Assembly: GCA_904063045.1 (NCBI GenBank)
Contig: CAJFCJ010000096.1
Location: 2,195 to 66,194 of the forward strand
Direction of reading: 5' to 3'
Source of the DNA: Dimorphilus gyrociliatus
Taxonomy: Eukaryota; Animalia; Annelida
Length of the DNA stretch: 64,000 nt
This document shows, in pieces, positions 1 through 62,300 of the stretch. Numbering within the stretch: the first letter of the stretch is position 1; the number at the start of each line of letters is the position of its first letter. The notes under the pieces are model-generated. The model was not told the DNA's origin and made no database searches. It saw only the letters and a list, made by a program, of their open reading frames with translations. A program made the translations under genes and the position numbers.

Positions 1-31
1 TCAATCACAATATTTTTGGGTTGTTCTCCAT

Positions 32-236
32 GGGACCGGTCGAAAACTTCCATAAAAGAAATATTTGAAAGTTAGATTTCAGCCTGGGAAATGGTTAGGA
101 GGAATAAGATAACTGTTGATATGTTCTTAGGAGGGTCCCATCTAAGGGTTAGGGGTATTCAAAAAGGTTAGGCAAAAACAAGGGCTGGGTTAGGGTTAGG
201 GTAAAACCATAGATATATGGCCGTTCTACCACATCC
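32..236 (+). mobile_element. MITE copy 1 (MULE-type non-autonomous element, 205 bp)
   Basis: Flanked by the 9-bp direct repeat gttctccat (23-31 and 237-245). Imperfect terminal inverted repeats. Near-identical to 27453-27659 and 44546-44752. Confidence 0.92.
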
Positions 237-590
237 GTTCTCCATCTAAAAGTTTTAGTATTTTTTTAAAATTATAGATATATTTGTACCACTTCAGACA
301 GAACATTTTTTAAAAATTTAAATGGATGTTATTGAAAACACCCACAGTTTTGTGGTTTACCCAAAATAACTTCAAAATGGGCGTTTTTAATTGCTCCCGA
401 TTAAAGTGTTAAAGAAACCCGATTATTATTGATTTGTTTGGTCATGTTGGTAAAAAGCACATATTTAGATATGAATAATAGATGGACAGAAAATGTCCTA
501 GAAAGAAGAGAAAACATTCATGAAATGCCAAAATAATCTATTATTATTATAATATTATATTCATATATAAATTTATATATACTGTATATA

Positions 591-1318
591 CAGTATAGAC
601 AAAAGTCCCTAGCCCCAGTTTAGATATTAAGCTATACAAAACAACTACTTTGATTTGGCAATAATAATCATTAATATGTATAAACTAATATTCTTTATCA
701 AAAAATTGTTTTTCTTTTATAAAATCCAGTTTTAGTAATTATACCTCGAAAAAAAGGGAGTTGTTAAAAATGAGTCACCATCTATTTTATCAAATATTTT
801 ACATAAAATTTACCTTAGGACACTGTTTTACAATTTATATATATGAACTATTATAACATTTTATAAAAATATAGTAATAATACTTTTAAACTTTTTTAAT
901 ACTTAGTATGACCAGCCTTATTGAAAAGACACTGCTGTAGCCTCTTTCTAAAACTATTAAGCCATTTTTCAACATATTCAGTTGGAATATTGTCAAATTC
1001 TTGCTGTGTTGCCCTCCTTAGATCATCTACATTTGTGCATGTATGTTTATCAGCCCTTCCTTTTATGTATGACCATAAATTTTCAATAGGATTTAGGTCA
1101 GGACTCTGGGCTGGCCAGTCTTCCATGTTTCTTATGTTCTTTTTATTTAGATACCTTAAGATACTCCTAGATGTATGGCATGGAGCACCATCCTGCATGA
1201 ATACATGATCTCTATTGTAATTCTCTAGAAAAGATTTATCAAGAATTTCTTGATATTTTTCTGAATTTAAATTGCTTTTATATAAATGTATACCGAAAGT
1301 GCTACAAGAAGAAGGCAA
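591..1318 (-). mobile_element. Tc1-like transposon remnant (3' half of transposase plus one terminal repeat)
   Basis: ORF 896-1318 has QDGAPCH...WPAQSPDLNPIENLW, the Tc1/IS630 catalytic motifs. End sequence TA|cagtatagacaaaagtccctagcccc at 589-616 matches the end of the copy at about 10920-10946. Confidence 0.88.
695..775. repeat. Dispersed repeat fragment, second copy at about 21686-21760
   Basis: Shared ttatcaaaaaa.tg...tttt...agttttagtaattatacct.gaaaaaa.gg..t.gttaaaaat. Confidence 0.65.
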
Positions 1319-1589
1319 CCAGCTTGATAAGTAACTATTAGACTAAAACAAAAAATAGAAATTTATAAAATAAAACAAGACAAAATAATTAATTAAGCTT
1401 ATATGGATTTTTTTGGCGCACCTTTTTGCCTCTTTTTTTAAGATAAATAAACAAAAAAACTATATGAGTGTATTCTACTAGTACAGTTCTATATATATAT
1501 TCCAGTGACAAGATATTTACTGCACTATGAGTAAAGGGAACCTTTGTATTCGGACCAATATCATAACTATTCTTCTTTTACTGGGTCAT

Positions 1590-1690
1590 TTATTATTATG
1601 AACTCCAAGAATATCAATAATTTTTGTACATCAATCCAACAATTTTGTGATGGAATCAATCATTGTACATATGTTATGAAAGCCATTTTT
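1590..1690 (+). pseudogene. Degenerate LDLa-repeat fragment related to the GRL101-like receptors
   Basis: Translation NFCTSIQQFCDGINHC resembles YCISVQNICDGINHC of the receptor genes. The rest of the repeat is lost. Confidence 0.45.
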
Positions 1691-2202
1691 TTGACAACAG
1701 CTCGGAGAAACAATCCTTTACATTCAGGCTCTTCGATAGCTAAAAATTTTAATAATAGAACCTTTCATAAAGCTATTAAATATAAATATAGTAATTCATT
1801 TAATACTTTAAAGAAAATACAATAAATTGAAAGTGTTGTCAGCACCTCCTGACACTACCTCTCTACACAACTAAAGTCCATGTTTTAGGAATACCCTTTT
1901 ATATTTCTAAATATAGAAAAAATTGAGAAAAAAAATCAATTTACCATTTCAAAATGGCCGCCAATCAACGTTTCAGGAATGAAGATTACTCTACATGTGG
2001 AAGTTGTTTGGTATCTTGAGTAGGATTTTATTCTGAAAGTGCTTCCTAGTAAATAACCATGCTGTTTTATATAAACTCAAAAACTGTCAATTGTAAAATA
2101 TTTTAGAAGGACTGCAAAAAATCTTAAACATTTTTAAGATTCATTATTTACATAATTGTTTTTTGAAGAACAGAGTTGATTGATTGAAATTTTTCTAAAA
2201 CA

Positions 2203-3918
2203 TTGTTCACCATTGAGGCAATAAGTCTATCTGGGAAAAGAGAGATGAGCAAGGGATTATTGAATATTTGTGAAGGACTTCAAATGTCATCGAATACTCT
2301 TAAATGTCTTAATTTTAATAGATGTAATTTAAATGAAGATCAAAGTGAACAAATTGGAAATTTGCTAAAACATTGTTCTGCAATAGAAACCATAAATCTG
2401 TCTGAGAATGAAGAGATGGGTAAAGGAATATCAAATATTTGTGAAGGACTTCAAATGTCATCAAACAATTTGAAGAATCTGGATTTAAAGCTATGTAATT
2501 TAAATGAAGATCAAAGTGCACAAATTGGAAATTTGCTAAAACATTATTCTGCAATAGAAACAATAAATCTGTCAGAGAATAAAGAAATGGGTAAGGGAAT
2601 ATTGGATATTTGTGAAGGCCTTCAAACATCATCAAAAACTTTAAAAAGTCTTAATTTTAATAGGTGTAATTTAAATGAGGATCAAAGTGCACAAATTGGA
2701 AATTTGCTGAAAAATTGTACTGCAATAGAAACTATAAATCTGTTGAGGAGTGACTTTGCTAAAGGAATATTGAAAATTTGTGAAGGACTTCAAATGTCAT
2801 CAAACACTTTAAAGAATTTGGATTTAAGTTTATGTTATTTAAATGAAGAACAAAGTACACAGATTGGAAATTTGCTAAAACATTGTTCTAGAATTGAAGC
2901 AATAAGTCTGTCTGAGAATAGACAGATGGGTAAGGGAGTATTAAACATTTGTGAAGGACTTCGAATGTCTGCAAATACTTTAAAGAGTCTTAATTTTAAT
3001 AGGTGTAATATAACTGAAGATCAAAGTACACAAATTGGAAATTTGCTGAAAAATTGTACTGCAATAGAAACAGTAAATCTATTAGGGAATAGGTTGGGTA
3101 ATGGAATGTTGAATGTTTGTGAAGGACTTCAATTATCATCAAACAGTTTGAAGAATCTGGATTTAAGTTTATGCCAATTGAATGAAGAACAATGCACACA
3201 GCTTGAAAATGTACTAAAGAATTGTTATAGAATTGAAAGAATAGGTCTTTTTGTGTACAGAAATACGAGTAACGAAATAATGAACATTTTTGAAAGACTT
3301 CAAATATCATCAGATACATTAAAGAATCTTAACTTAAATAGATATAATTTAAATGAAGATGAAAGTACACAGATTGGAAATTGGCTAAAACATTACTCCA
3401 GAATAGAATCTATAGATCTATCTAAGAATAGAGAGATGGGTAGGGGAATATTGAATATTTGTGAAGGACTTCAAATGTCATCAAACACTTTAAAGAGTCT
3501 TAATTTTAATATGTGTAATTTAGATGAAGATCAAAGTATACAGGTTGGAAATTTACTAAAAAATTGTTCTAGAATTGAAGCAATAAGTCTGTCCTGCAAC
3601 AGACAAATGGGTAAGGGACTTTTCAATATTTGTGAAGGACTTCAAATGTCATCAAATACTTTAAAGAGTCTTCATTTAAATGGATGTATTTTAAATGAAG
3701 ATCAAAGTATACAGGTTGGAAATTTGTTAAAACATTGTTGCAAAATAGAAACAATGTATCTTTTGTGGAATAGACAGATGGGTAAAGGAATAATAAATAT
3801 TTGTGAAGGACTTCGAATGTCATCAAATACTTTTAAGAATCTTAATTTAAAAAGGTGTAATTTAATTAAACCTCAAAATACGCAAATTGGAAATTTGCTG
3901 AAACTTTTTTCTGAATAG
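2203..3918 (+). CDS. RI/NLR-type leucine-rich-repeat protein, about ten 56-57 aa double repeats; 5' end decayed (first in-frame ATG 2245), possibly a pseudogene
   Basis: 571-codon ORF made of about 171-bp tandem units (IETINLSxNxxMGKGIxNICEGLQMSSNTLKxLNFNRCNLNEDQSxQIGNLLKxC). Upstream sequence is a frameshifted, stop-containing extra repeat. Confidence 0.85.
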   Translation: MFTIEAISLSGKREMSKGLLNICEGLQMSSNTLKCLNFNRCNLNEDQSEQIGNLLKHCSAIETINLSENEEMGKGISNICEGLQMSSNNLKNLDLKLCNLNEDQSAQIGNLLKHYSAIETINLSENKEMGKGILDICEGLQTSSKTLKSLNFNRCNLNEDQSAQIGNLLKNCTAIETINLLRSDFAKGILKICEGLQMSSNTLKNLDLSLCYLNEEQSTQIGNLLKHCSRIEAISLSENRQMGKGVLNICEGLRMSANTLKSLNFNRCNITEDQSTQIGNLLKNCTAIETVNLLGNRLGNGMLNVCEGLQLSSNSLKNLDLSLCQLNEEQCTQLENVLKNCYRIERIGLFVYRNTSNEIMNIFERLQISSDTLKNLNLNRYNLNEDESTQIGNWLKHYSRIESIDLSKNREMGRGILNICEGLQMSSNTLKSLNFNMCNLDEDQSIQVGNLLKNCSRIEAISLSCNRQMGKGLFNICEGLQMSSNTLKSLHLNGCILNEDQSIQVGNLLKHCCKIETMYLLWNRQMGKGIINICEGLRMSSNTFKNLNLKRCNLIKPQNTQIGNLLKLFSE

Positions 3919-4599
3919 AACCAATAGATCTATCTGTCAAGGGGTTGAGTGTGAATATGTAATAATTCTATTATTGAAGTTTTGAATGAATTGTTTGGCC
4001 ATAAATGTATAAACTGTTCTCTTGATTAGATAGAGTTATATTTCTTTAATTAATTTGAACCAAGTGCTTTTTGCAAGATTTAATAGAGATAAATATAACT
4101 ATGCTTTCTTGTGGATTATTGAAGTACAATATTCGATTTAAAGTACTATCTTCAATTTTTCAACTAAGTCAATATATTTCATAAATGAAATTGAATAGTT
4201 GGAAAAAAATTATTAATAACTTTCTACCTGATGAACTCTGCAGAGAGACATTTGTGAAAATAGGGAAAGGAATTTAATCTTTATAACAAACTCAAAACAT
4301 CAGTCGTATCTGATAAATAAACTTGAATAGTTTAAAAATCAACATGCTGGCTTGTGGTAGTATCATACATTATTGAAATTATAATATTAATCCATTGTTC
4401 AGCAAATTTAAAAGTATAATTGTAGCATTTTACATAGTTTGAGTATGGAAAATCTAAGATCACAGATGAAGCTGAGTTTCAATCAACTCTTACTTTTGAA
4501 TGATGGTTTGTCAACCTCCTGTCTGAAAATTGTACATTGTTTCTTTTTTTCTTGATTAGCTAGACTAAATATGGCATTTTTACTTCTTTCAATCAAATT

Positions 4600-5743
4600 T
4601 CACATAAAATAAAATCCTTTAGCAGACCCAGAGAATGAGGGAATCTGACTTAGCGACGCATAGTGACAATGACTCATTATATAGAATACATGATCAATGA
4701 TTGTAAACAGTGATGATGTGTGGGCTCTTTTTTCCATTGCACATATAAAGGCTCTGATAAATCTGCTTCCAGACCTTTCACCAGATAGACCTGCATATCC
4801 TTCAAAAAGACATTACTCTATCATAAGTGATTATCTGTTAGGATATCCATACCTTGAATTGTTGAATAGATTTGTAAGGTATCTCCGCCAGGAATTGCGT
4901 GTTCAGAAATGTATCTTTTTTTGCATATTTTCCCAGACTGTCTATTAGTTCTCAATTCATTTTCATGTTCAAACTCTTTGAAAACAGCTTCACATTCTTT
5001 TGTTTCTTTTTTATGGAAAACATAACCTGCAAAAACGTTTTTGAACAGTATTTAAATAGAAACTGGTACCATACTCATTACCTCCTAGACAAGTATTGAA
5101 AAAAAATATTTTCGGTTTTAAGTCCAGCTCTGTACAGTTGGAAGAACTAAACTTATTAATTAAATCAGCATAGGCAAAAAAATCATTTGATTCTCTCCTT
5201 TTCTTTTGATTAGGTTTTAAATAAAACCCATTTTCATCTCCATGTGCCATTGTAAAGAATATTAATCCTCCAAACTTTTTCAATTTTTTTTTTAGTTTTT
5301 TCAAAAGTGCTTGAAACGTATCAATGTCAAGGTCATCCCAATGTTCAGTGGAATATTTCGTCTCAAAAGCTTGTTTAACAATTTGATTATGAATTGTTAT
5401 GTTGAATTTATTTATAGATTCAATGTTAAACAAGTTTTTTACGAGATGATTTTGTCAGTTCTCTAAACAATTTTTGTAAATTTTTAACATCAATCTTGCT
5501 TTCTTGTCGCCTATTCTTCTTAGTTTCACTATAATAAATGCTTATGTTATTGAACATGTTAGAACAGCTGTTTTAAAAAACTACAAATATCCTGAAAGAT
5601 CAATTCTATCATCTCTAAATGTGCATATTTAACTTTCTAGAAGAGCTAACCCTAACATTACAATATGTAGAGAAGTGAACCTACTAAGTTTTTATGTTCA
5701 GTATTATAACTTTGATAATCTTTCCTCTGGTGTCATAGATGGT
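4600..5743 (-). CDS. Caspase (peptidase C14) domain, five exons
   Basis: Spliced translation gives IILNIKTY...RRQESKIDVKNLQKLF, TMAHG (catalytic His), KPKIFFFNTCLG (catalytic Cys), IPGGDTLQIYSTIQGY, GSRFIRAFIC and QIPSF...FYFM*, matching p20 and p10 caspase motifs. Confidence 0.9.
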
Positions 5744-8700
5744 CTGCAATGAAATAAAAAGAATGAATTAAGTAATAAAGTGTGTTTGAAGATTTTGCAC
5801 TGATTCACATAAAAGTGGCCACTAAGATTTTGGCTATTATTTATAATGTGTCAATGTGACAATGTTTAGAAATAAACCAATGCAAATCTTCTATATAATT
5901 TCTCTCTGTTTTAGACCTTTCCACACTCCATTTTAAATTGAAAATTATCTTTAAAATTTCTGTCTTTTCCAGTGAAAGGTATTATTAGTACATTCTCTAA
6001 AAGAATAAAGAGTAAACTTTTATAGAAAAGAGGAAAGCAACTAACATTGAACTTACCATTTGATAGAAAATATTTATAAGAATCCAACTGTGTTTTAGGG
6101 AATTTGAAATGTGGAACACGATTTATCAAAGTCTTAGAGTCACTCTCATAAAGTGGGATATAATCAGGTGTCTTAAAAACTAAATAGTCCAATGTAGCTT
6201 TTGCAATTGTTTTTGAACAGTTTTTTTTCTTCATGTGGCTCCTCTTCAATAAAAATGTTGTTATAAAAGCTGCCAGTGGATTGCTACAAACTTTTAGTAT
6301 ATTTGTAGTACTTGTCATTGAATTAAGATATTGATTTTTTTCACGTAACTGTTGAAAATATTCGTATGTTGATGAAAAGCCAATCACTTCTCTTTCATAG
6401 TCTGATTTTACATTTTCAGCTGAAAAATTTCTTGAGAATATTACAACTGAATGTGGAAAATGAATAGGTTGGCCAGTAATTATTTTATAGAAGTCATTCT
6501 GTTCATTATTCATTTTATCAAATTCATCCAAAAGAAATAAAATCCTTTTGCCTTTCTTTCCAAAATACTGCAGGAACCATTGGACACAGTAGATAGACTG
6601 CCAGAGATCATTTTTCCATTGATTATATAGAGAAGTGTAGTATGATTCATTTTCCTTAACTTTACTCAAGTCAATTCTGATAATCAAATCTATATTCTCA
6701 ATTTGAAAATGTTCAGGTTTTTTCATTATCTGTAAACATAGAAATGATTTTCCACTTCCTCCCTCTCCTTTTATCAACATTTTGAAACTTTTTTTCAAAT
6801 TTACAAAAGATAGAGATACTTCTTTATTGTGCGTATCTGTAATCTTTAATGGTTTGTAAGCTTTGTCAAAATCTATGTTTTCATGTTTCCTAATTAACTT
6901 TTTATTCAAAAGAAAATTTGAAATGTTTTGTAAAATTTCATTGCAAACATGTTGAATTGAATCTTTCACAATGGTTTGATTACGATTTAGAAAAATTTCG
7001 GAAATTTGTTCCAAAACCTCTTCAGTATAAACAGGTCCAATTTCTTCCAATAACTTGCATCTTATACCCAGATGTTCATCATAAACTATATGTAGATTAG
7101 TAAAATTTGGAGAATACTTTGTCCAATATTTGCTTTCACTTTGCAGTTTCTCCTTCTTCAGAATATCTTGAAATTTCACAGACCATTTAATAAAAAATTG
7201 GACAAACTTAAATTCTATCTTTTCTCCTAGTAATGCAGATTCAATATTACTGGTTTGCTTCTGAAAACAAACAGAAGGTTAAAAATTAACAATGAAACTG
7301 TAGTGAACAGTTTCTATATAGAATTTATTTTACTTTTCTTGGCAGCTTCCATTTATGAAGTGTATGTGGGCCTAACAGACGAAATCCATCCATTTCTTCG
7401 GAATTATTATTGATTAAAATTGAATGAGGAAAATTTTCAGTTTCTCCATTCAATATTTCACGGAATGCACTTGGAACTGTTCCATTAGGATCATATTTTG
7501 TAATCAGAAAAGTTATTGTATAGTTATTTTCTTTGCAAAATGTAAAAAATTTAGAAATCATCTCTTCTGTGTATTCATTGAAAATTTGTTTCTCTAAAGT
7601 TTTTAAATAGGTTTCATTCTTCTCAATTTTATTAAAATTTAGTTTCAAAAATATTACTGTATCTAATTCCTTCAGGCCAGGAAATTGACTACCAAATTGA
7701 CATCTGTAATAGTTAGAATGGTTACTCTTTTTAAAGTACTCAAAATACATCAGCCATTTTCCAAAATAGAATTTGTAGATATGAGAAATATTCTCTCTTA
7801 ATTCTGATTCATAATATTCTTCTACATGATACATGTGTATGATAGGAAAAAATTCATTATCCTCGGACAATAAAGTCTGTAATTGCTGTCTTTTCTCCTC
7901 CATCAAACAATTTTTTTGTACCAAATTATATACAGTTTCACTCATACTGTTCTCTGAAGGAGAAAAAATCTGTTTGTTTGAAAAAAATGCGTGATTATTA
8001 CATTACCAAATGAGCTTATTCAGAAATGTAAAATGACAGCTTACCGGAAATGGAATAGCACAAAATATTTCTAAATCAGCATTTTTCAATTCGAAAACCT
8101 CTTCGCTATTCAACCTTATTTGATTTTTTGACCAAGCATCAAAAGAGTATTTGAATTTTTTTTTACCTTGAATAACATTTGAAAAATATTCATTTTCAGG
8201 TGAAATATCATCTAAATGATCAAAGAAGAAATGAATTTTTCTTTCTTGTAATTTATAATATTCTAACATCCATTCAAACAGTTCATTTGAAAACCAAGAA
8301 GCTTTACTGTCAACTTCTCTTCTTATTAGTGTTAAATAATCATCCTGACCTTTCACCTTTCTCAAATCTAATTTAATTATTAGATCAAAAGGACAGGAAA
8401 TTTCTTCTTCTGTATCAAAAATAGAAATATATTGCATGTGTGATAATACTAACATGTGACTATAATCTTGGCTATGGAAATTTCTCAAATTTTTATTGTT
8501 TGTATATATTCTAAAAGCTGTGTCTTTCCATAAACTACTTTTGTCCATTGAAGAAAAAAGTTCACATTCCACGTAATTTGTAAGATAATCACATATCTGA
8601 TTTAAAAGAATAGTAGCAGTATTTCTATTTGATAACTTCTCTAATTCTTTGCATATTTCAACTATATTCTTTTCAGAATTAAATTCTTTGGCCACTTCAC

Positions 8701-8758
8701 CATACACATCTTCTAGTTGATCTTTAAACTTAATAATCGGACATTCTCTTGGATTCAT
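4600..8758 (-). CDS. Multi-exon NACHT-like x2 + NACHT NTPase + C-terminal caspase-domain protein (about 1146 aa model)
   Basis: Hand-built exons 8758-8045, 7969-7334, 7260-6057, 5996-5917, 5743-5685, 5528-5443, 5369-5082, 5026-4853, 4799-4600. All introns GT-AG with matching phases; total 3441 nt, open to the stop. Walker A GEGGSGKS and Walker B ILFLLDEFD in exon 3. The 5916 donor (gtctaa) is weak. Confidence 0.72.
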
Positions 8759-9237
8759 AACTAAACACTATAATAACTTTACTCATGCAAATAAATACTA
8801 CTCCAGTTAGCAATATACAATATCCCATGGGCCAAAAATTACAAAAGTCTTTGTAATTGATTATAAAGATAAAGAGTTATGTAGTTTCGTTTTCTGTGAC
8901 TCACCATGCTCACTCAATATCTGAAATGCTCTTAAGCAATACTACAGTACAGGTAACCTATTTTTGAACGCTCAGCTATTTTCTATTTTAGTTAAAATAT
9001 TTTTTCTTTAACATTAACTTTACAATCGAATAATTAGACATGGAAATTTGCCACTTTGTAATCAACATATTCAATTAATTAAATCTTCAAATTTCACTGT
9101 TTAAGTATCAAAAAAAATTTTATTCTGAAAAAATTACACAAAGTGCCCGATATCCTATTTTTGAACAATAATTGAATTATTGGGTACGGTTTGACCCAGG
9201 TACGGTTTCACCCGTAAATGAGGTTACTGAACCTAAC

Positions 9238-9360
9238 ATACTATTTCCTGTTCCTAAATGGGGTGGAGATGATTATAAAGTTATTTCAATTGAGGAATGC
9301 TTTGCTGTTTGCAATTCCTATGAAGAATGCAAGTATGTTAATTCGTGACAGAAACAAAAA
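9238..9360 (+). pseudogene. Orphan duplicate of PAN-domain gene exon 1 end plus donor site
   Basis: Nearly identical to 11795-11915 (ggagatgattataaagttatttcaattgaggaatgc...tgcaagta.gttaattcgtgacagaaacaaaaa). Confidence 0.8.
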
Positions 9361-10016
9361 TGTACTAATATAGTTACTATATACTACTGTTACTACTTAC
9401 GCCCTGCTTTTATACAATTCCTTATCAGTTGTTTTTATGCCTTAGCTGTTAAAAACAAGGGTCTAACCCCAGATAATGATTGTTTACAACAAACAGGGTC
9501 AAGAGTTATCATATTATGCAATAGTGATGTAAACAACAACAACTTTGTGTCAAGGGTCAATTCTTACATCATATTTATGTAAATAAACGCTTGTTGTTGT
9601 TGTCAACATGCTTTGTTATGTAATACCTTTGCTTATAAAAGGGGTTGATTCTGGCAGTTAGGTACCATCTACCCCAGAGGAAGTATCTACTTCAACACTT
9701 CTACCATATGGTAAGTATTATTTATAAAATATCTATAAAATATAGTTTATAAGCGTACAAAAATTATTTTTCTTAAATAGAATTATGTTGTTTAAAGGGT
9801 ATTTTATGTAATTTCATACAACATTTGTTTTTTTCAGATTTTTAAAGTACTTTTTTTTAATTTTAGACAACAAGTACTTTTTGCAATTAAATTATATAAT
9901 TTAAAAATGGCCATATATATCTATACAAACATGTTTCTTATCTAAATAGTTTTTAAAACATTTGAGTTTAGAACAAATCTTACTTCGCAGATAATTACTT
10001 ACATTTCTTTGTCAAA

Positions 10017-10946
10017 ATGAAATATCAATCACAAATTAGAGACCTAGCAAGGCGGAAAAAAGGTGAAATGACCTACAAAGAACTTGAGGCAGACTTGAAA
10101 ATCTCAAAACTTTCACTCCAGTATATCTGTGAGAACAAAAGAGAAGGAAAACCTGACAGAAGGGGAAGACCACCCAAAGCCAATGACAGAGTGAAGACAT
10201 TGATTAAGAGAGAGTGTATAAGATTGCAGGAAAACAAAGAGTTGGCAACTGCTGAAAAAATTAAGGATAATTTAAGCCTGGATGTTTCTGAAAGAACCAT
10301 TCTGAGGATTCTAAATAAAAATAGAGCAAAGTATCTGTCTATTTTGAAGGTATGCCCTTTGTCAGCAAGAGCAAAAAGCACACAGTTAAGTATACTTGGT
10401 AGATGGGTTCAGAGCCAAATTGAATACAAAAAAGTTGGCAAATATGCAAAAAAAACTTTTAAAGAGGCAAATGGTTCCCTAAATATATGGGGTTTTATAA
10501 AAAGTGATGGCAGCAGAGGTTTATATAAAAGTAATTTAAATTTGGAGAAATATCGAGAAATTCTTGATAAATCTGTTTTAGAGAATTATAATAGAGACCA
10601 TGTATTCGTACAGGATAGTGCTCCATGCCATACATCAAGGGGTACCTTGAGGTATCCAAATGAAAAGAACATAAGGCACTTGGAAGACTGGACAGACCAG
10701 AGTCCAGACCTAAATCCTATTGAAAATTTATGGTCATACCTAAAAGGAAGGGTTGGTAAACATATGTGCACAAATATAGATGATCTATGGAGGGCAACAC
10801 AGCAAGAATTCAACAATATGAATATGTTGAAAAATTGTTTAATAGTTTTAGAAAGAGGCTACAGATGTGTCTTTTCAATAAGGTTGTCATACTAATATCT
10901 AAACTAAAAATTTTACGAGGTGGCTGGGGACTTTTTGCCCATACTG
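10017..10946 (+). mobile_element. Tc1-like transposon, defective transposase with right terminal repeat
   Basis: 292-aa ORF with N-terminal HTH-like part, GRPPK, QDSAPCH and QSPDLNPIENLW. The first catalytic Asp region appears deleted. Ends ...ggggactttttgcccatactg|TA. Left end not found. Confidence 0.88.
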
Positions 10947-14953: not shown

Positions 14954-17092
14954 TTAAAATTCTATTTGAATTTTTGAGAAATTTTTAAACATGTTCAAAA
15001 CTCTTTTACATTCCTCCTCATTCAAATTACAACCAAGGAAATTAATTTCCTTTAAAGCGTTTGCAGATTGAACAAGTCCACTGCAAATATCAAATAATCC
15101 ATTTCCCATCTGTTGATTTCGTTTTAAATTAATTATCTCTAATTTAAAACAATATTTTAACAGATTTCCAATTTGTTTACACTGTTCTTCATTTAGATTG
15201 CAACCGAGAAAATCCATTTCCTTCAAATGACTGGAGGATTTGATAAGTCCACTGCAAATTTCAAATAATCCATTTCCCATCTGTTGATTTCGTTTTAAAT
15301 TTATTACTTCTATTCTGGAGCAATTTTTCAAAAGATTTCCAATTATTCTGCATTCTTCTTCATTTAAATTGCAGTCTAGAAAGTTAACAACCCTCAAATT
15401 GTTTGCAGATTGAACGAGTCCGCTGCAAATATCAAATAATCCATTTCCCATATTTCCATTACCTCCAAAATGGATTTTTTCAATGTTGGAACAATATTCA
15501 AACAATTTTCCAATCTTTCTGCATTGTTGCTCATTCAGATCACACCAAAGAAAATTTATCTCTTTTAAAGAATTTGACGATTGAAGGAGTACTTTACAAA
15601 TATCAAATAATCCATTTCCCATTTGTTGATTCCATTCAAAATTGATTGTTTCTATATTTGAACAATTTTCAAATAGATTTCCAATCATTTTACATTCATT
15701 TTCATTTAAATTACACCAGAAAAATATCACATGTTTTAAAGAATTCGATGATTGGACGAGTCCATTGCAAATATTTGATAGACCATTTCCCATATTTTCA
15801 TTTCCTCCGATATTAATGGTTTCAATTTTTGAACAACGTTTGAGTAGTTTGCCAATATGCTTACAATGTTCTTCATTTAAATTACACCAAATAAAATTCA
15901 AATCCTTCAAAGTGCTCACAGCTTGTTCAAGTCCATCGCAAATCTGTAATAATCCATTTTCCATCATTAGATTTCCACCAAGATGAATTGTCTCTAATTG
16001 AGAGCATTTTTTAAACAATTTTCCAACCATTCTATTTTGTTCATCATTCAAATTACAACTAAAAAGGTTGATATTTTTCAAAGTATTGAATGATTGTTCA
16101 AGTCCATTGCAAATGTTAAAAAATCCATTATCCATTGTTTTATTATATCCAAGATTGATACTTTCAATGGTTGAGCAATGTTTCAAGAGATTTCCAATTT
16201 TAATGCTCAATTCCTTTTCTAAATTGCAGCAATTCTCCAAATTAACATTTACTGTTTTATGCTTAGAAAGTTGTATAGTTTTCCAGATTATTCTCAATTC
16301 TTTCTCTCCAACAAATCTCTTTGACAAGTCAATCAAATTTGATGAATTTTTTATTTTATCTTCATCAGTCTGCTGACAGGAATTTTCCGTTTGAATTTCC
16401 AATAAATTTCCAGCAATATCAATACTTTTCATAACATTGGAATTATTTTGAATATGGCAATTTATTTGTATATTTTCAACAATTTGTATTTCTAACTTTT
16501 TAAAATTATGTAAAAAATCTTCAACTTCAATATTTTCATTAAAAATTGAATTATAATATTTCTGTCTTGTTTTATTTGTATTTTTAATGATTTTTCTAAT
16601 ATTTTGAAATTCATTTTGAAGTTTTGCTGTTGCTTTTTTCTCGTGTTCATCAATTTTTCTTTGAAGATTTTCTTCATTCTCTGTTTCTTCTTTAAGGAAA
16701 TTTTCAATTTGTTGTTTTCTGCTTTCAAATTTTGACATTGAAAAAATTTTGCAATTTTTATGATCTTTATCTAAACATTTTAGGCATATATTTTCAATAT
16801 TTTCAGTTTGACAATAGAGTAATAATTCCTCTTGATGAATTTTACACAAATTATTGCCTATAGATGGCGGTAGTTGTATTGAAGGTTTAAAAAAACTTTT
16901 TGGTAATTTGTTTACCTGATTTCCAGGTATTCTTCCAGTTTCTATGCACTGAGGACAAATAATTTCAAAATTTCTTCTTTCTAATCTATCTATGCATTTT
17001 AAACAAATCACATGTTGACAAAACAGAAATACAGATTCATCATCTTTCCAAATATCTAAACAATTTACGCACTGTAGTTCATTGGTAGCCAT
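14954..17092 (-). CDS. TRIM-like E3 ligase: RING-HC + B-box 2 + coiled coil + about seven 57-aa NLR-type LRR double repeats; intronless
   Basis: C3HC4 RING CVNC...CQHVICLKC...CPQC; B-box CKIHQEELLLYC...ICLKCLDKDH; K/E/Q-rich helix; then repeats of the same family as 2203-3918. Start context ttcaaaATGG. Confidence 0.92.
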   Translation of the reverse strand: MATNELQCVNCLDIWKDDESVFLFCQHVICLKCIDRLERRNFEIICPQCIETGRIPGNQVNKLPKSFFKPSIQLPPSIGNNLCKIHQEELLLYCQTENIENICLKCLDKDHKNCKIFSMSKFESRKQQIENFLKEETENEENLQRKIDEHEKKATAKLQNEFQNIRKIIKNTNKTRQKYYNSIFNENIEVEDFLHNFKKLEIQIVENIQINCHIQNNSNVMKSIDIAGNLLEIQTENSCQQTDEDKIKNSSNLIDLSKRFVGEKELRIIWKTIQLSKHKTVNVNLENCCNLEKELSIKIGNLLKHCSTIESINLGYNKTMDNGFFNICNGLEQSFNTLKNINLFSCNLNDEQNRMVGKLFKKCSQLETIHLGGNLMMENGLLQICDGLEQAVSTLKDLNFIWCNLNEEHCKHIGKLLKRCSKIETINIGGNENMGNGLSNICNGLVQSSNSLKHVIFFWCNLNENECKMIGNLFENCSNIETINFEWNQQMGNGLFDICKVLLQSSNSLKEINFLWCDLNEQQCRKIGKLFEYCSNIEKIHFGGNGNMGNGLFDICSGLVQSANNLRVVNFLDCNLNEEECRIIGNLLKNCSRIEVINLKRNQQMGNGLFEICSGLIKSSSHLKEMDFLGCNLNEEQCKQIGNLLKYCFKLEIINLKRNQQMGNGLFDICSGLVQSANALKEINFLGCNLNEEECKRVLNMFKNFSKIQIEF

Positions 17093-45929: not shown

Positions 45930-46730
45930 AATATGGGAAATGGATTAGTAGAGATTTATAATGGACTCGTCCAAACGAATGTACAACTATTGGATAACTC
46001 TTGAAAAATTGTTCTAAAATTGAAATTTGTGAATTTAAGTCCAATCAAAATGCTGCCTTTGGTATATCCGATATTTGTATTGAACTAACCCAATCAACAA
46101 GCACTTTAAAAAGTCTTAACTTTTCAGAGTGTGACCCAATTGAAAATGAATGTACACAACATACAAAGATGCTCTACAATAGAAACACTTAAATTAGGAT
46201 ATAATAGTTAGATGGGAAATGGACTTTTAAAGATTTTTAGCCAACTGACTATAAACCATCAAATACACTAAATATTCTGATTCTTAATCAATGTAACCTA
46301 ACTAGTTTTGAATGTAAAAGTATTAAAAAAAGACTGTAAAATTGTCCTAAATTTGAAAAATTAAATATTAGCTGGAATAATAATATTCAAGATGGAATTT
46401 CAGATATTTGCACTGGACTTTTAAACTGTTCAAGTTGGTTGAAATATTTAAATTTTACTTTTTTTGTCTAAGTAACATTAAAAGTGAATTTATTGAAAAT
46501 ATGCTGAGTAAATGCTCAAAACTGGAAAAATTCAACATAAGTGATAATTCTGAAAAGGGAAATGGATTCTTTGACATTTGTAATGGACTCGTTAAATCAT
46601 TATTACCTTGAAATATGTGTATTTTAGCCATTGGTATCATTCGAAATACCTTGAAAACTGGTAATAAATTGAAAATTGAATTTTGAAAAAAACACAATCC
46701 CACACGGACTAAGTCATAGATTTTGTAAAA
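45930..46730 (+). pseudogene. Degenerate NLR-type LRR pseudogene of the 2203/14954 family
   Basis: Fragments MGNGLVEIYNGLVQ, KNCSKIEI...LKSLNFSEC and CSKLEKFNISDNSEKGNGFFDICNGL lie in different frames with stops. Confidence 0.8.
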
Positions 46731-59362: not shown

Positions 59363-62300
59363 TTATCCAAGTCTATTTCTAATTTTAATGTTTTCAGAAA
59401 GACAACTGATATCCATTTGTCTAAATTGAATATTCCAAATGTGAAAGGTTTTTAATTTTTTTTGGAAAAATATTGCATCATAAATGGAATTTCCAATCTT
59501 GGAGTTAATTCCACAAAGATTGCAAAATAATTCAGAGATTTGATGGCAATTCTTTCTTATGTTTTGAAAGATACCTTTTCCAACATCATTTCCAAATTGA
59601 TTATTGCTGAAACATAATATTTTAAGTTGACTTTGCTGCCCAATCATCTCACCAATTACATTTCCAATATTAGGAGTAAAACCACAACTTTCAAATTTAA
59701 GAATTACTATACAAGAACAGTTTTGTTGTAGATTATAAAATAGATTAAAACCAATATCATCTCCTATTTGGTTATTAGAAAATATTAATTCTTTAAGGGC
59801 TCTCTGTTGGCCTATTGCATCTCCTAAAATATTTCCAATTAACGGAGAAAATCCACAATTAGCAAATTTAAGTACAGAAATATTAAAGCAATTTTCTTTA
59901 ATATTTTCAAATATATTTTTTCCAACATCATCTTGTAAAAAGTTTTCAGAGAAATATAAATATTCCAAACCTCTTTGTTTTCCAACAGCATCTCCAATAC
60001 AATCTCCAATATGAAATGTAAAATTACAACTTTCAAAGTGAAGAAATGTAAGTCTATTACATTTTCTTTTTAAATTTTCAAAAATACTTTTTCCAACATT
60101 ATTTCCAAAAGAATTTTGAGAGAATGAAAGTCTTCTAATTCGGGTTTGTTGACCAATGAATTTACCCACAATATCACCAATATTGGAGGTTAATCCACAA
60201 TTCGCAATATTTAAATTTAAAATATTACAGCAACTTTCTTTAATCCTTTCAAAGATATATTTTCCGAGATTATCTCCCAATGGATTATTAGCTAGACATA
60301 AATCTTTGAGATTGTTTCCTTGTTTACTAATAGCATTGCCAATAACTCTACCAATTTCAGATGTAAAATTACAATTCCTAAAATTAAAATTTTCTATCAT
60401 ACAACAATTCATTTCAACATTTTCAAAAATACATCTCCCAACATCATTTCCAAGTGAATTATTATATAATGACAACATTCTCAAATTAGCTTGTTCAGCT
60501 ATTGCATAACCAACAACATTTCCAATTTCAGATGTAAATCCGCAATTATTGCAATCGATTATTTCGATTTTTCTACAATTTTTTTGAATATTTTTAAAAA
60601 TATATCTACCAATGACACTACATAGTTGATTATTGCAGAGTGAGAGTACTTTTAACTCAGTAAAATTAGCAATTGCATCACCAATTATATAACTCAAATT
60701 TGAAGTGAAGTCACAATTACGAACATTTAAAAATTCTAAATTCAAACACTCTGATATCATACTTGAAAAGATGTTCTTTCCAACTATATCACCTAATTTA
60801 TTATCTTTTATACTTAAGGTAATAAGGGAACATTGTTTACCAATAGCATCACCAATAATATTTCCAATTCTATAAGTAAATCCACAATTTGAACATTTCA
60901 AATTGCATAGTTTTGTACAATTTTCATTTAAATTTTTAAATATCACTCTCCCAATATCATCACCAAAATTATTATCACTAATATCTAACACTTTCAAATC
61001 TTTTTGTCTGCCAATCATATTTCCAAGAAAATTGCCAATTTTACAAGTAAATCCACAATTTTTAATAGCCAAATAAGTTAATTTTTGACAATTTTGATAT
61101 AGTTTTTCAAATAGATTTTTACCAATGTCATCCCCAAACCTATTTCCAGAGATATGTAATACATCCAAATTAGTTTGTTGACCAATACCATTAGAAAAAG
61201 AATATCCAATTTTTGAAGTAAATTTACAATTTTCAAATTTAAGAAAAACTATTTGAAAACAAATTTGTTGAATTGATTGAAAAATACAAGAACCAACATA
61301 ATCTGTAAGTGCATTATCAGAAGAAGAAATACTTTTAAGATAAGTTAATTGACCAATTGCATTGCCTATAATATCATCAATTTTTGATGTAAATCCACAA
61401 TTATAATATTCAAGTTCTGAAATTTTTTTACATTTCAATTTAATGTTTGAAAATATATTTGCTCCAATAGAGTCTCTTAAATTATTTTCAGATAAAAAAA
61501 GAGATCTAAGATTTGTTTGTTGGCCTATTGCATCACCTAAAGTATTTCCAATTTGTGAAGTAAATCTACAATTGCTCAGATCTAAACATTTAATATATTG
61601 ACAATATTTCTTTATGTTATAGAATAAATGTCTACCAACAAAATTACCAAGATTATTGTTGAATATATATAATTCATTAAGATATTTTTGTTGACCAATT
61701 GCATCACCAAGAATATCACCAATTTCTGATGTAAATCCACAATCATTAAAATTGATTTTACGAATATTTCGACAATTATTACTAATATTTTGAAAAATAT
61801 TTTTTCCCACATAGTCTCCTAAATAATTATTAGAAATATCTAACCTTTGCAGATAATACTGTTGACCAATTGCATCACCTAAAATATTTCCAATATTTGG
61901 TGTAATTCCACAATTTTCAATATTTATAAATGTTAAATTATGATGTGTTTCTTTTATATTATAAAACAAAATTTTTCCAACAACATCTTCAATATTATTA
62001 TTCCAAAGATTCAATTCTTTGAGATATTTCTTTCTGCCAATCATAACACCTAATATATTTCCAATGTCTGAAGTAATTCCGCAATTACCTAGATCTAAAA
62101 TTGATATGTTTGGGCAATTGTTCTCCAAGTGTGATAAAATATATTTCCAACCTTCATCACCAAACTCATTGTCCCAGAGATACAGCTGTTTGAGTTTGTC
62201 TTGTTGATTAATAATTATATCAGAAATGATACCTGCTTCCTCTGAAGTAAATTCGCATTTTCCAAAACATATGGTAGAAAGATGTTTACATTTTTTTTCA

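Follow-up and report, generated by a model that had tools for sequence, protein, structure and literature searches.

A transcribed gene of the annelid Dimorphilus gyrociliatus joins NACHT-type modules and an animal-type caspase on one chain

Initiator caspases are, in the textbook view, activated by induced proximity on a STAND NTPase platform. Both in Apaf-1/CED-4 and in NLRC4, NLRP1 and NLRP3, a separate caspase is recruited through CARD, PYD or DD adaptors situated N-terminal to the nucleotide-binding domain (NBD), and sensing by the Apaf-1/CED-4 apoptosome and the NLR inflammasomes is performed by C-terminal LRR or WD40 repeats. The effector that is clustered by the known STAND platforms lies N-terminal to the NBD. 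To our knowledge, caspase activation on such platforms uses separate proteins and death-fold adaptors in all animals studied.

Bacteria combine the two activities on one polypeptide. In their (meta)caspase-NACHT-WD40 and caspase-STAND fusions the protease is usually N-terminal (Asplund-Samuelsson et al. 2012, PMC3501461), as had also been stated in the initial annotation of the locus described here, and caspase-STAND fusions are found in the conflict systems of Kaur/Aravind as well (PMC8195603). Among animals, TNFR-caspase and LRRs-caspase fusions of amphioxus have been described as 'shortcut' proteins (Zhang et al. 2008, PMC2575513), and the accessible part of that study names no NACHT-caspase combination. 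For annelids, the accessible part of a preprint (bioRxiv 10.1101/2023.12.11.571055) lists caspases with odd prodomains (ROC, TIR, kinase, ANK and Z-binding) and reports that Apaf-1 is absent from the phylum.

The gene DgyrCDS14893, a minus-strand chain of nine exons (8758..4600) on a D. gyrociliatus contig, is a real, expressed gene that joins NACHT and caspase on one chain. GenBank and UniProt already list it as a CDS without name or characterisation. Exon bounds (Table 1) were taken from the joints in spliced RNA contigs of four public runs (X1, X3, X4 and X5). The translation of the exon chain (ORF of 3441 nt, 1146 aa) was identical to the deposited model, and the in-phase chain of 1146 aa proposed in the initial annotation is this same protein. 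From the N-terminus, two inactive NACHT-like modules are followed by a NACHT module with intact nucleotide-binding motifs, to which an animal-type caspase is joined with essentially no linker. All eight introns are GT..AG, every joint was represented among the spliced contigs of the four runs, and transcription was detected in four samples from two studies. The longest open frame comprises 455 codons, whereas shuffles of the region (n = 500) averaged 70 and never exceeded 141; the 1146 codons are uninterrupted by stop at a regional GC content of 29%. An in-frame stop (8770-8768) immediately precedes the ATG, an upstream ATG at 8786 is out of frame, and the X1 contig extends to 8807, with zero depth at 8968-9151. 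Given this stop and the contig ends near 8807, there is no sign of an overlooked 5' exon encoding an N-terminal death fold.

Table 1. Features of the DgyrCDS14893 locus (positions within the analysed window, i.e. the whole 64-kb stretch of DNA)
Feature	Position	Strand	Basis
5' UTR, minimum extent	8759..8807	-	X1 contig end; upstream in-frame stop
Exon 1, residues 1-238, degenerate NACHT-like module 1	8045..8758	-	BLASTP vs module 3
Exon 2, residues 239-450, degenerate NACHT-like module 2	7334..7969	-	BLASTP vs module 3
Exon 3, residues 451-851, helical N-terminal part + NACHT NBD + HD1	6057..7260	-	Pfam, phmmer, motifs
Walker A; Walker B	6768-6745; 6540-6517	-	Within exon 3
Exon 4, residues 852-878, winged-helix domain (WHD) remnant	5917..5996	-	Alignment; joints 5996/6057 and 5743/5917
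Intron 4, NACHT-to-caspase junction, 173 nt, GT..AG	5744..5916	-	Spliced in X1, X3, X5
Exon 5, caspase catalytic domain start (beta-1, VIILN)	5685..5743	-	RNA joints, alignment
Exon 6, caspase p20 incl. Arg905 (caspase-3 Arg64 equivalent)	5443..5528	-	RNA joints, alignment
Intron 6, 73 nt, alternatively retained	5370..5442	-	X1 contigs
Exon 7, caspase p20 core; His969 at 5244-5242, Cys1020 at 5091-5089 in NTCLG	5080..5369	-	
Exon 8, intersubunit region + p10 start	4852..5024	-	Joints in 4/4 runs
Exon 9, remaining p10 (GYAGLS, Ser1086) + stop codon	4600..4798	-	RNA joints, alignment
3' UTR, approximate	4224..4599	-	Contig ends 4402 (X3), 4224 (X4), 4434 (X5)

The initial annotation had observed that only about 170 bp without an evident start exon separate the NTPase from the caspase, and had proposed RNA evidence across the 5917/5743 junction as a check. 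The gap is a spliced intron, and the 5917/5743 joint was found together with the NACHT exon on the same RNA contig in X1, X3 and X5, at depths of 62.4, 17.5 and 8.11, respectively, where contigs assembled from short reads are not equivalent to single molecules and the crossing of intron 6 is supported by 30-nt sides. Four isoforms are annotated that differ by ORF-truncating intron retention, and the shorter ones (879, 897 and 931 aa) stop right after the NACHT part. Retention of intron 6, which yields the 931-aa isoform DgyrCDS14894, was visible in X1 (depth 79.2 for the spliced contig vs 28.9 for the retained contig, 5340-5472). Retention of intron 4 would give the 879-aa isoform; bin depths over this intron equal exactly the exon contribution, leaving no room for intron-retaining contigs.

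The isoforms that end after the NACHT part could also be read as products of a separate gene, with NACHT and caspase linked only by occasional read-through and the two proteins normally separate, and the somewhat higher X1 contig depth on the caspase exons (81.5 vs 62.4 on the NACHT exons) points in the same direction. This depth difference, however, fits ordinary 3' bias, and the joint from exon 4 to exon 5 was the only continuation of the NACHT exon observed in three runs. In exons 5-7, the reading frame encounters no Met until residue 967, two residues ahead of the catalytic His, so that stand-alone translation of the caspase is impossible: such a product would be devoid of beta-1 and most of p20. 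Spliced leaders are absent from D. gyrociliatus according to the genome paper (PMC7854359). We consider two separate genes highly improbable. A decayed caspase pseudogene was rejected as well: the raw frames seem to stop after NIKT and to shift after SSRKKLV, but both places are short introns (156 and 73 nt) that the RNA contigs show to be removed.

The NACHT module of exon 3 carries the two motifs named in the initial annotation, a Walker A motif GEGGSGKS (residues 615-622), aligning with GIGKS of the related proteins P0002, P0003 and P0004, and a Walker B motif LFLLDEFD (residues 691-698), aligned to LLLDGADE and LDGFDE of the relatives. Further downstream, the sensor-1 stretch IFSRN (724-728), the GF motif VIGFSS (742-747) and the CxxPL motif of HD1, CSNPL (775-779), were aligned to TSRP, IGFS and CSNPL/CHIPI. 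P0002, P0003 and P0004 were the sole phmmer relatives of the NACHT part (E values 7e-09 to 1e-04) and themselves pass the Pfam NACHT profile PF05729; the module of DgyrCDS14893 reached 24.7 bits as part of the whole protein and 26.1 bits as exon ORF, against a gathering cut-off of 26.7, and matched AAA_22 at 27.2-28.9 bits (cut-off 27). When the NACHT part alone was compared by phmmer to the sequences of solved structures, no meaningful match was obtained, while a profile of the four-sequence family matched NLRP3 at 1e-22 and also NLRP1, NOD2 and NLRC4. The AlphaFold2 model of the NACHT part with the 4-row alignment had a pLDDT of 40, too low for use.

In the alignment the module is truncated. 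P0002, P0003 and P0004 all carry the winged-helix motif FxHxxFQEFxAA at or just past the position of FQFKMECGK, and this helix with its His is absent from DgyrCDS14893, in which the chain reads FQFKMECGK and then continues into the caspase. The two upstream modules are degenerate: module 1 has lost the P-loop, retains a Walker-B-like IHFFFDHLDD, has no Pfam match and resembles the NACHT core of module 3 (BLASTP E 1e-09, 31% identity over 89 aa), and in module 2 (E 7e-08 vs module 3) the P-loop, the Walker B Asp and the sensor Arg are all gone. Residues 1-450 gave no Pfam match, and no N-terminal death-fold, BIR or other effector domain was found there. Likewise, LRR, WD40 and death-fold families had no Pfam match in the 1146-aa protein, in agreement with the NTPase having been annotated as free of LRRs. 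The LRR arrays of the window all belong to other genes or ORFs, which are distant or on the opposite strand. The closest NACHT relative is P0002, and the 696-aa ORF that neighbours it in Logan contigs matched no Pfam family.

The C-terminal part (residues 890-1138) matched Pfam Peptidase_C14 with an E value of 7.7e-22 and 78.6 bits (cut-off 21.4), covering profile positions 4-225 of 233. Its closest solved structures are caspase-3, -7 and -9, and its Atlas neighbours are animal caspases. AlphaFold2 modelling of the caspase alone gave a pLDDT of 36, too low for use. His969 (AHGDE) and Cys1020 (NTCLGG) align with SHG and QACRG of caspase-3. A complete p20+p10 fold with His and Cys, as had been claimed initially, is thus present, with the correction that the pentapeptide QACRG is not retained and that one of the two Asp-binding Arg residues is Ser. 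The active-site pentapeptide reads NTCLG in place of QACXG. In the S1 pocket the equivalent of Arg64 is kept (Arg905), Gln161 is replaced by Asn1018 and Arg207 by Ser1086, and the equivalents of Trp206 and Trp214 of caspase-3 are Leu and Arg. Because of NTCLG and of Asn, Leu, Ser and Arg at substrate-groove positions, altered specificity and weak or no activity are possible; the remodelled S1 pocket suggests a putative protease without classical strict Asp specificity. This pocket, the truncated NACHT, the two dead modules and the position of the caspase, which sits where an LRR or HD2 region would normally form the C-terminus, go beyond the initial annotation and complicate the mechanism.

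The replacement of several substrate-groove residues of caspase-3 and of QACRG by NTCLG would also fit a real fusion in which the caspase is not an executioner but a pseudo-protease, or a protease of altered specificity, that serves as a regulatory or bait module, with the NACHT signalling otherwise. It might, for example, be an integrated decoy for caspase inhibitors or proteases of pathogens, or pair with free caspases in a dominant-negative manner. Both the location of the caspase at the C-terminal sensor position and the missing WHD His helix, which normally locks the off state, would be in line with such a role. On the other hand, the domain is full length and has kept its catalytic His-Cys dyad and the first S1 Arg, and no alternative effector domain is found elsewhere in the protein. 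We regard a non-executioner caspase as possible but unlikely.

Protein homology searches with the caspase alone, the caspase region or residues 451-1146 returned the protein's own cluster or nothing, and no orthologue or relative of the same architecture was found in them. Among 1.84 billion representative proteins, only four matched the NACHT query at E<=0.001, one of them being DgyrCDS14893 itself, and no D. gyrociliatus paralogue of this query was obtained at that threshold; a tblastn search of the entire window with the protein as query likewise detected none. A literature search for 'NACHT-caspase' and 'caspase-NACHT' as hyphenated terms had no match. No description of a NACHT-caspase fusion in animals was found in the literature, including work on sponges, actiniarians, metazoan NLRs and amphioxus, and the surveys of animal NLRs and caspases that were consulted list no such protein, consistent with the initial statement that animal NLRs normally recruit a separate caspase. 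The layout is known from bacteria and has related precedents in amphioxus and annelids.

The scarcity of matches is what would be expected of a young lineage-specific chimera that is transcribed and spliced without selected function or is heading to decay. Two of the three NACHT modules are dead, the third is truncated and falls short of the Pfam threshold, and the caspase has an eroded pocket; the four isoforms with truncating intron retention add to this, and the introns on either side of the first caspase exon (introns 4 and 5, 173 and 156 nt compared to a median of 66 nt in this compact genome; PMC7854359) are consistent with a former intergenic region. Nevertheless, 1146 stop-free codons at such a low GC content and eight precisely removed introns speak against decay, as does expression in four samples from two studies. 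Moreover, the residues for NTP hydrolysis and the catalytic dyad are all kept while neighbouring positions have diverged strongly. A chimera without function therefore appears rather unlikely to us.

DgyrCDS14893 resembles the bacterial fusions in carrying a C14-fold protease and a NACHT/STAND NTPase on one polypeptide, with a presumed NTPase switch acting on a protease effector, and inactive STAND modules have been described there, too. The nearest large Atlas clusters with NACHT and Peptidase_C14 are all bacterial. However, the bacterial proteins usually combine an N-terminal protease with C-terminal WD40, TPR or HEAT sensors, whereas the caspase of DgyrCDS14893 is of animal type, C-terminal and without a repeat sensor, and nothing suggests its descent from bacterial fusions. 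With Apaf-1/CED-4 and NLRC4/NLRP1/NLRP3 it shares a STAND NTPase of the same superfamily and a caspase as output; it differs by the covalently attached caspase, the lack of death-fold and LRR, the truncated WHD and the two dead NBD-like modules upstream. Unlike the effectors of known STAND platforms, its caspase is at the C-terminal, normally peripheral, sensor position. The amphioxus fusions, as far as the accessible part of that study describes them, likewise place an upstream immune module directly on a caspase domain, bypass adaptors and are expressed, but they have no NTPase and keep QACXG. The annelid caspases of the preprint come from the same phylum and have CARD/DED prodomains swapped for another signalling module; in its accessible part, though, no NACHT prodomain is reported, and DgyrCDS14893 was not seen in its list of D. 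gyrociliatus caspases.

On balance, and with modest confidence, we favor a lineage-specific annelid gene whose product is a single chain in which a NACHT nucleotide switch clusters and activates its attached caspase. Driven by nucleotide, the NACHT module would switch the chain into oligomers, in the manner of Apaf-1, NLRC4 and bacterial NACHT proteins. Upon assembly, the covalently linked caspase would become locally concentrated and be activated by proximity without CARD, DD or DED adaptors, an arrangement that may amount to a 'shortcut' protease for cell death or immunity. The signal is likeliest to enter at the degenerate N-terminal modules or through nearby-encoded partner LRR proteins, and the intron-6-retaining isoform might act as a NACHT-only product that modulates the system.

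ORC and tandem AAA+ proteins mix active and inactive subunits. By analogy, the three NBD-type modules (two dead, one live) could form a part-ring, such that two or a few chains would suffice for a small closed platform in which the C-terminal caspases pair, a self-contained, adaptor-free 'mini-apoptosome', within a wider habit of D. gyrociliatus of hard-wiring caspases to sensors; we offer this as speculation and think it improbable.

The proposed activation of the attached caspase would point to cell-death signalling in D. gyrociliatus having been rewired to work without adaptors. With NACHT and caspase on one chain, the induced proximity model could be tested in a single polypeptide. If the proposal is true, the direct coupling of an NTPase switch to a caspase-fold protease is open to animals as it is to bacteria, and given the reported absence of Apaf-1 the gene is a candidate answer to how annelid caspases are triggered.

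A minor alternative joint (7593/7658) within the exon 2 region was seen in X1 only, and AATAAA/ATTAAA signals are located at 4278, 4084 and 4050.

Joining the nine exons defined by eight constitutive RNA-contig joints gave a 3441-nt ORF whose translation was letter for letter that of P0006 (DgyrCDS14893), as expected from the in-phase chain of 1146 aa in the initial annotation. Searched exhaustively with HMMER, the NACHT open frame matched the 931-aa DgyrCDS14894 of the annelid Dimorphilus gyrociliatus, the matched parts being identical. Its sister models DgyrCDS14893, DgyrCDS14897 (897 aa) and DgyrCDS14896 (879 aa) share its 66,194-bp contig, CAJFCJ010000096.1 in assembly GCA_904063045.1. The 1146-aa chain is already deposited in GenBank and UniProt as an unnamed, uncharacterised CDS. 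GC content of the window is 29%. Introns 4 and 5 are long, at 173 and 156 nt; all others span 53-75 nt, and the median intron of the genome is 66 bp (PMC7854359). A stop after NIKT and a frameshift before the p20 core in the raw frames were only apparent, both being short introns. As the gene's 5' end lies near 8807 and an in-frame stop immediately precedes the start codon at 8758, the set of N-terminal exons appears complete. An out-of-frame ATG in the 5' UTR, 28 nt ahead of the start codon, may open a short uORF.

RNA evidence came from Logan contigs of four public runs (X1, X3, X4, X5; two studies) over region 4000-9500. The runs carry no RNA label but behave as transcriptomes, since intergenic depth at 8968-9151 was zero in all four and all contig gaps were flanked by CT..AC, i.e., GT..AG on the minus strand. 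The junction 5917/5743, at which the initial annotation proposed an RNA check, was found in X1, X3 and X5 at the contig depth of the NACHT exon (62.4, 17.5, and 8.11), and a single 1689-nt contig in X1 ran from 7593 through the NACHT exon and exons 4, 5, and 6 to 5443. Over introns 4 and 5 bin depths exactly matched the exon contribution alone (e.g., X1, 62.4 x 59/184 = 20.0), so that no retained-intron contig was present there. Intron 6 was both spliced (X1 depth 79.2) and retained (contig 5340-5472, depth 28.9), retention giving the annotated 931-aa isoform that ends after SSRKKLV. At 60 nt, intron 3 keeps the frame and holds no stop, leaving the genomic ORF continuous (455 codons), yet all four runs showed it spliced out, along with the 20 hydrophobic residues it would encode. 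A minor, frame-shifting 64-nt GT..AG joint within exon 2 (7593|7658) occurred in X1 only, at depth 14.8 vs. about 60.

No start exon had been seen for the caspase, and indeed the earliest in-frame Met encoded by its exons is residue 967, which precedes the catalytic His by two positions. Spliced leaders are absent in D. gyrociliatus (PMC7854359), and beyond the NACHT exon the RNA contigs continued solely through the joint of exons 4 and 5. The two halves therefore are not separate genes, and the alternative raised before, transcripts stopping after the NACHT part with an independent caspase start, did not hold. The contigs were built from short reads and do not represent single molecules. Read-through between two genes is highly improbable, and the NACHT-caspase architecture is confirmed at the RNA level.

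Pfam NACHT matched residues 611-706 of the third module (exon 3) with 24.7 bits in the whole protein and 26.1 bits in the exon ORF, both slightly below the cut-off of 26.7 bits; AAA_22 scored above its own. The sequence has every diagnostic NACHT motif, including the two from which the NTPase had been recognized, and these align with relatives. HMMER with the NACHT open frame, run over 1.84 billion representative proteins, found just three matches at E <= 0.001 besides the gene itself, all bona fide NACHT proteins: P0002 (686 aa, Logan contigs), P0003 (a metagenomic trypsin-like-protease-NACHT protein), and P0004 (an Aspergillus ARM-NACHT-HEAT protein). The four-sequence profile matched NLRP3 at 1e-22, followed by NLRP1, NOD2, and NLRC4. 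The module is shortened, FQFKMECGK leading directly into the caspase where relatives have the winged-helix FxHxxFQEFxAA helix. P0002, the nearest NACHT relative (30% identity), keeps its FLHxxFHEY WHD motif intact and ends in an LRR-like tail. Together with the 696-708-aa ORF downstream of it, which has no Pfam family, it occupies L002:1343-3403 and L002:3972-6062, on Logan contigs from runs SRR23372231 and SRR23372229.

No Pfam family was detected in exon 1 (residues 1-238) or exon 2 (residues 239-450). Both align to the beta2-Walker B-sensor region of the third module (BLASTP E 1e-09 and 7e-08), and by sequence they are degenerate NACHT-like modules, one per exon. In the multiple alignment both have lost the P-loop, and module 2 additionally the Walker B Asp and sensor Arg; they are presumably inactive. 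Pfam found no CARD, DD, DED, PYD, TIR, or LRR in the chain, in line with the LRR-free architecture first described.

Residues 890-1138 match Peptidase_C14 (E 7.7e-22, profile positions 4-225 of 233), the best solved structures being caspase-3 and caspase-7, and caspase-9 for the C-terminal half; Atlas (protein cluster collection) neighbours are animal caspases. Judged by alignment with caspase-3, the fold and the catalytic dyad are intact, as originally read. The active-site pentapeptide is NTCLG, not QACXG, and with the pocket substitutions this makes classical Asp specificity doubtful. Set between an intact dyad and an altered pocket, a bait, regulatory or pseudo-protease role of the caspase part seems unlikely. 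The fusion falls about ten residues ahead of beta-1, and the entire caspase prodomain is thus replaced by the NACHT array.

Features of the NACHT-caspase protein and of the window
Feature	Position	Strand	Remark
Walker A	residues 615-622		GEGGSGKS
Walker B	residues 691-698		LFLLDEFD
Sensor-1 strand	residues 724-728		IFSRN
GF motif	residues 742-747		VIGFSS
HD1 motif	residues 775-779		CSNPL
Catalytic His	His969		caspase-3 His121, retained
Catalytic Cys	Cys1020		caspase-3 Cys163, retained
S1 pocket	Arg905		caspase-3 Arg64, retained
S1 pocket	Asn1018		caspase-3 Gln161
Substrate groove	Leu		caspase-3 Trp206
S1 pocket	Ser1086		caspase-3 Arg207
Substrate groove	Arg		caspase-3 Trp214
Transposase ORF	896-1318	-	Tc1/mariner-type (DDE_3-like)
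LRR frame	2188-3915	+	576 codons, ~57-aa double RI/NLR-type units
RNA-like contigs	4000-4183		immediately downstream of LRR frame
NACHT open frame	5914-7278	-	
Intron 3	5997-6056	-	
Alternative joint	7594-7657	-	
Upstream ATG	8786	-	
Loose contig ends	9181-9428		several
High-depth region	9336-9500		
Transposase ORF	10017-10895	+	Tc1/mariner-type (DDE_3-like)
Paralogous LRR array	14957-16453	-	annotated 712-aa TRIM-LRR, 42-45% identity
Paralogous LRR array	45938-46599	+	
Paralogous LRR array	59909-62158	-	

The most likely mode of action follows the example of Apaf-1, NLRC4, and bacterial NACHT proteins: nucleotide exchange would make the live NACHT module oligomerise and so concentrate the covalently linked caspase, which would then be activated by proximity without adaptors. 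Signals could enter via the dead modules, inactive STAND modules being proposed sensors in bacteria (PMC8195603), or alternatively via partner proteins. Against such oligomerisation-driven activation, which we infer from these analogies, stand the caspase's position, peripheral in known STAND wheels, the absent WHD His helix, and the remodelled S1 pocket.

The gene belongs both with direct sensor/platform-caspase fusions and with STAND-protease fusions. Among the former, the 'shortcut' proteins of amphioxus have TNFR or LRRs joined directly to a caspase (PMC2575513), and annelid caspases with ROC, TIR, kinase, ANK or Z-binding prodomains are described, Apaf-1 being reported absent from annelids (bioRxiv 10.1101/2023.12.11.571055). 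Among the latter, metacaspase-NACHT-WD40 proteins are common across bacteria with the protease usually first, bearing out the N-terminal placement given for bacteria in the initial annotation; one cyanobacterial protein is NACHT-HEAT-metacaspase (PMC3501461). Large Atlas clusters near residues 451-1146 with NACHT and Peptidase_C14 were all bacterial. No animal NACHT-caspase fusion is listed in the bacterial (PMC3501461) or amphioxus (PMC2575513) surveys, the annelid caspase study (bioRxiv 10.1101/2023.12.11.571055), or the sponge and metazoan NLR surveys consulted, and a full-text search for hyphenated NACHT-caspase terms returned no paper, a statement about the literature that does not prove rarity across Metazoa. 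That the gene is a young chimera lacking a selected function seems slightly less probable still than the bait or pseudo-protease role.

The LRR frame and the NACHT-caspase gene are convergent, with about 680 bp between the end of the frame and the gene's stop codon. The frame shows no evident start exon with an ATG and does not figure among the genes called on the deposited contig. The locus lies between two transposase ORFs, and the one at 896-1318, adjoining the upstream side of this frame, may have truncated it. The high-depth region (526 in X1, 48-127 in other runs) begins some 530 bp upstream of the NACHT-caspase gene and is either a neighbouring transcript of high abundance or a repeat.
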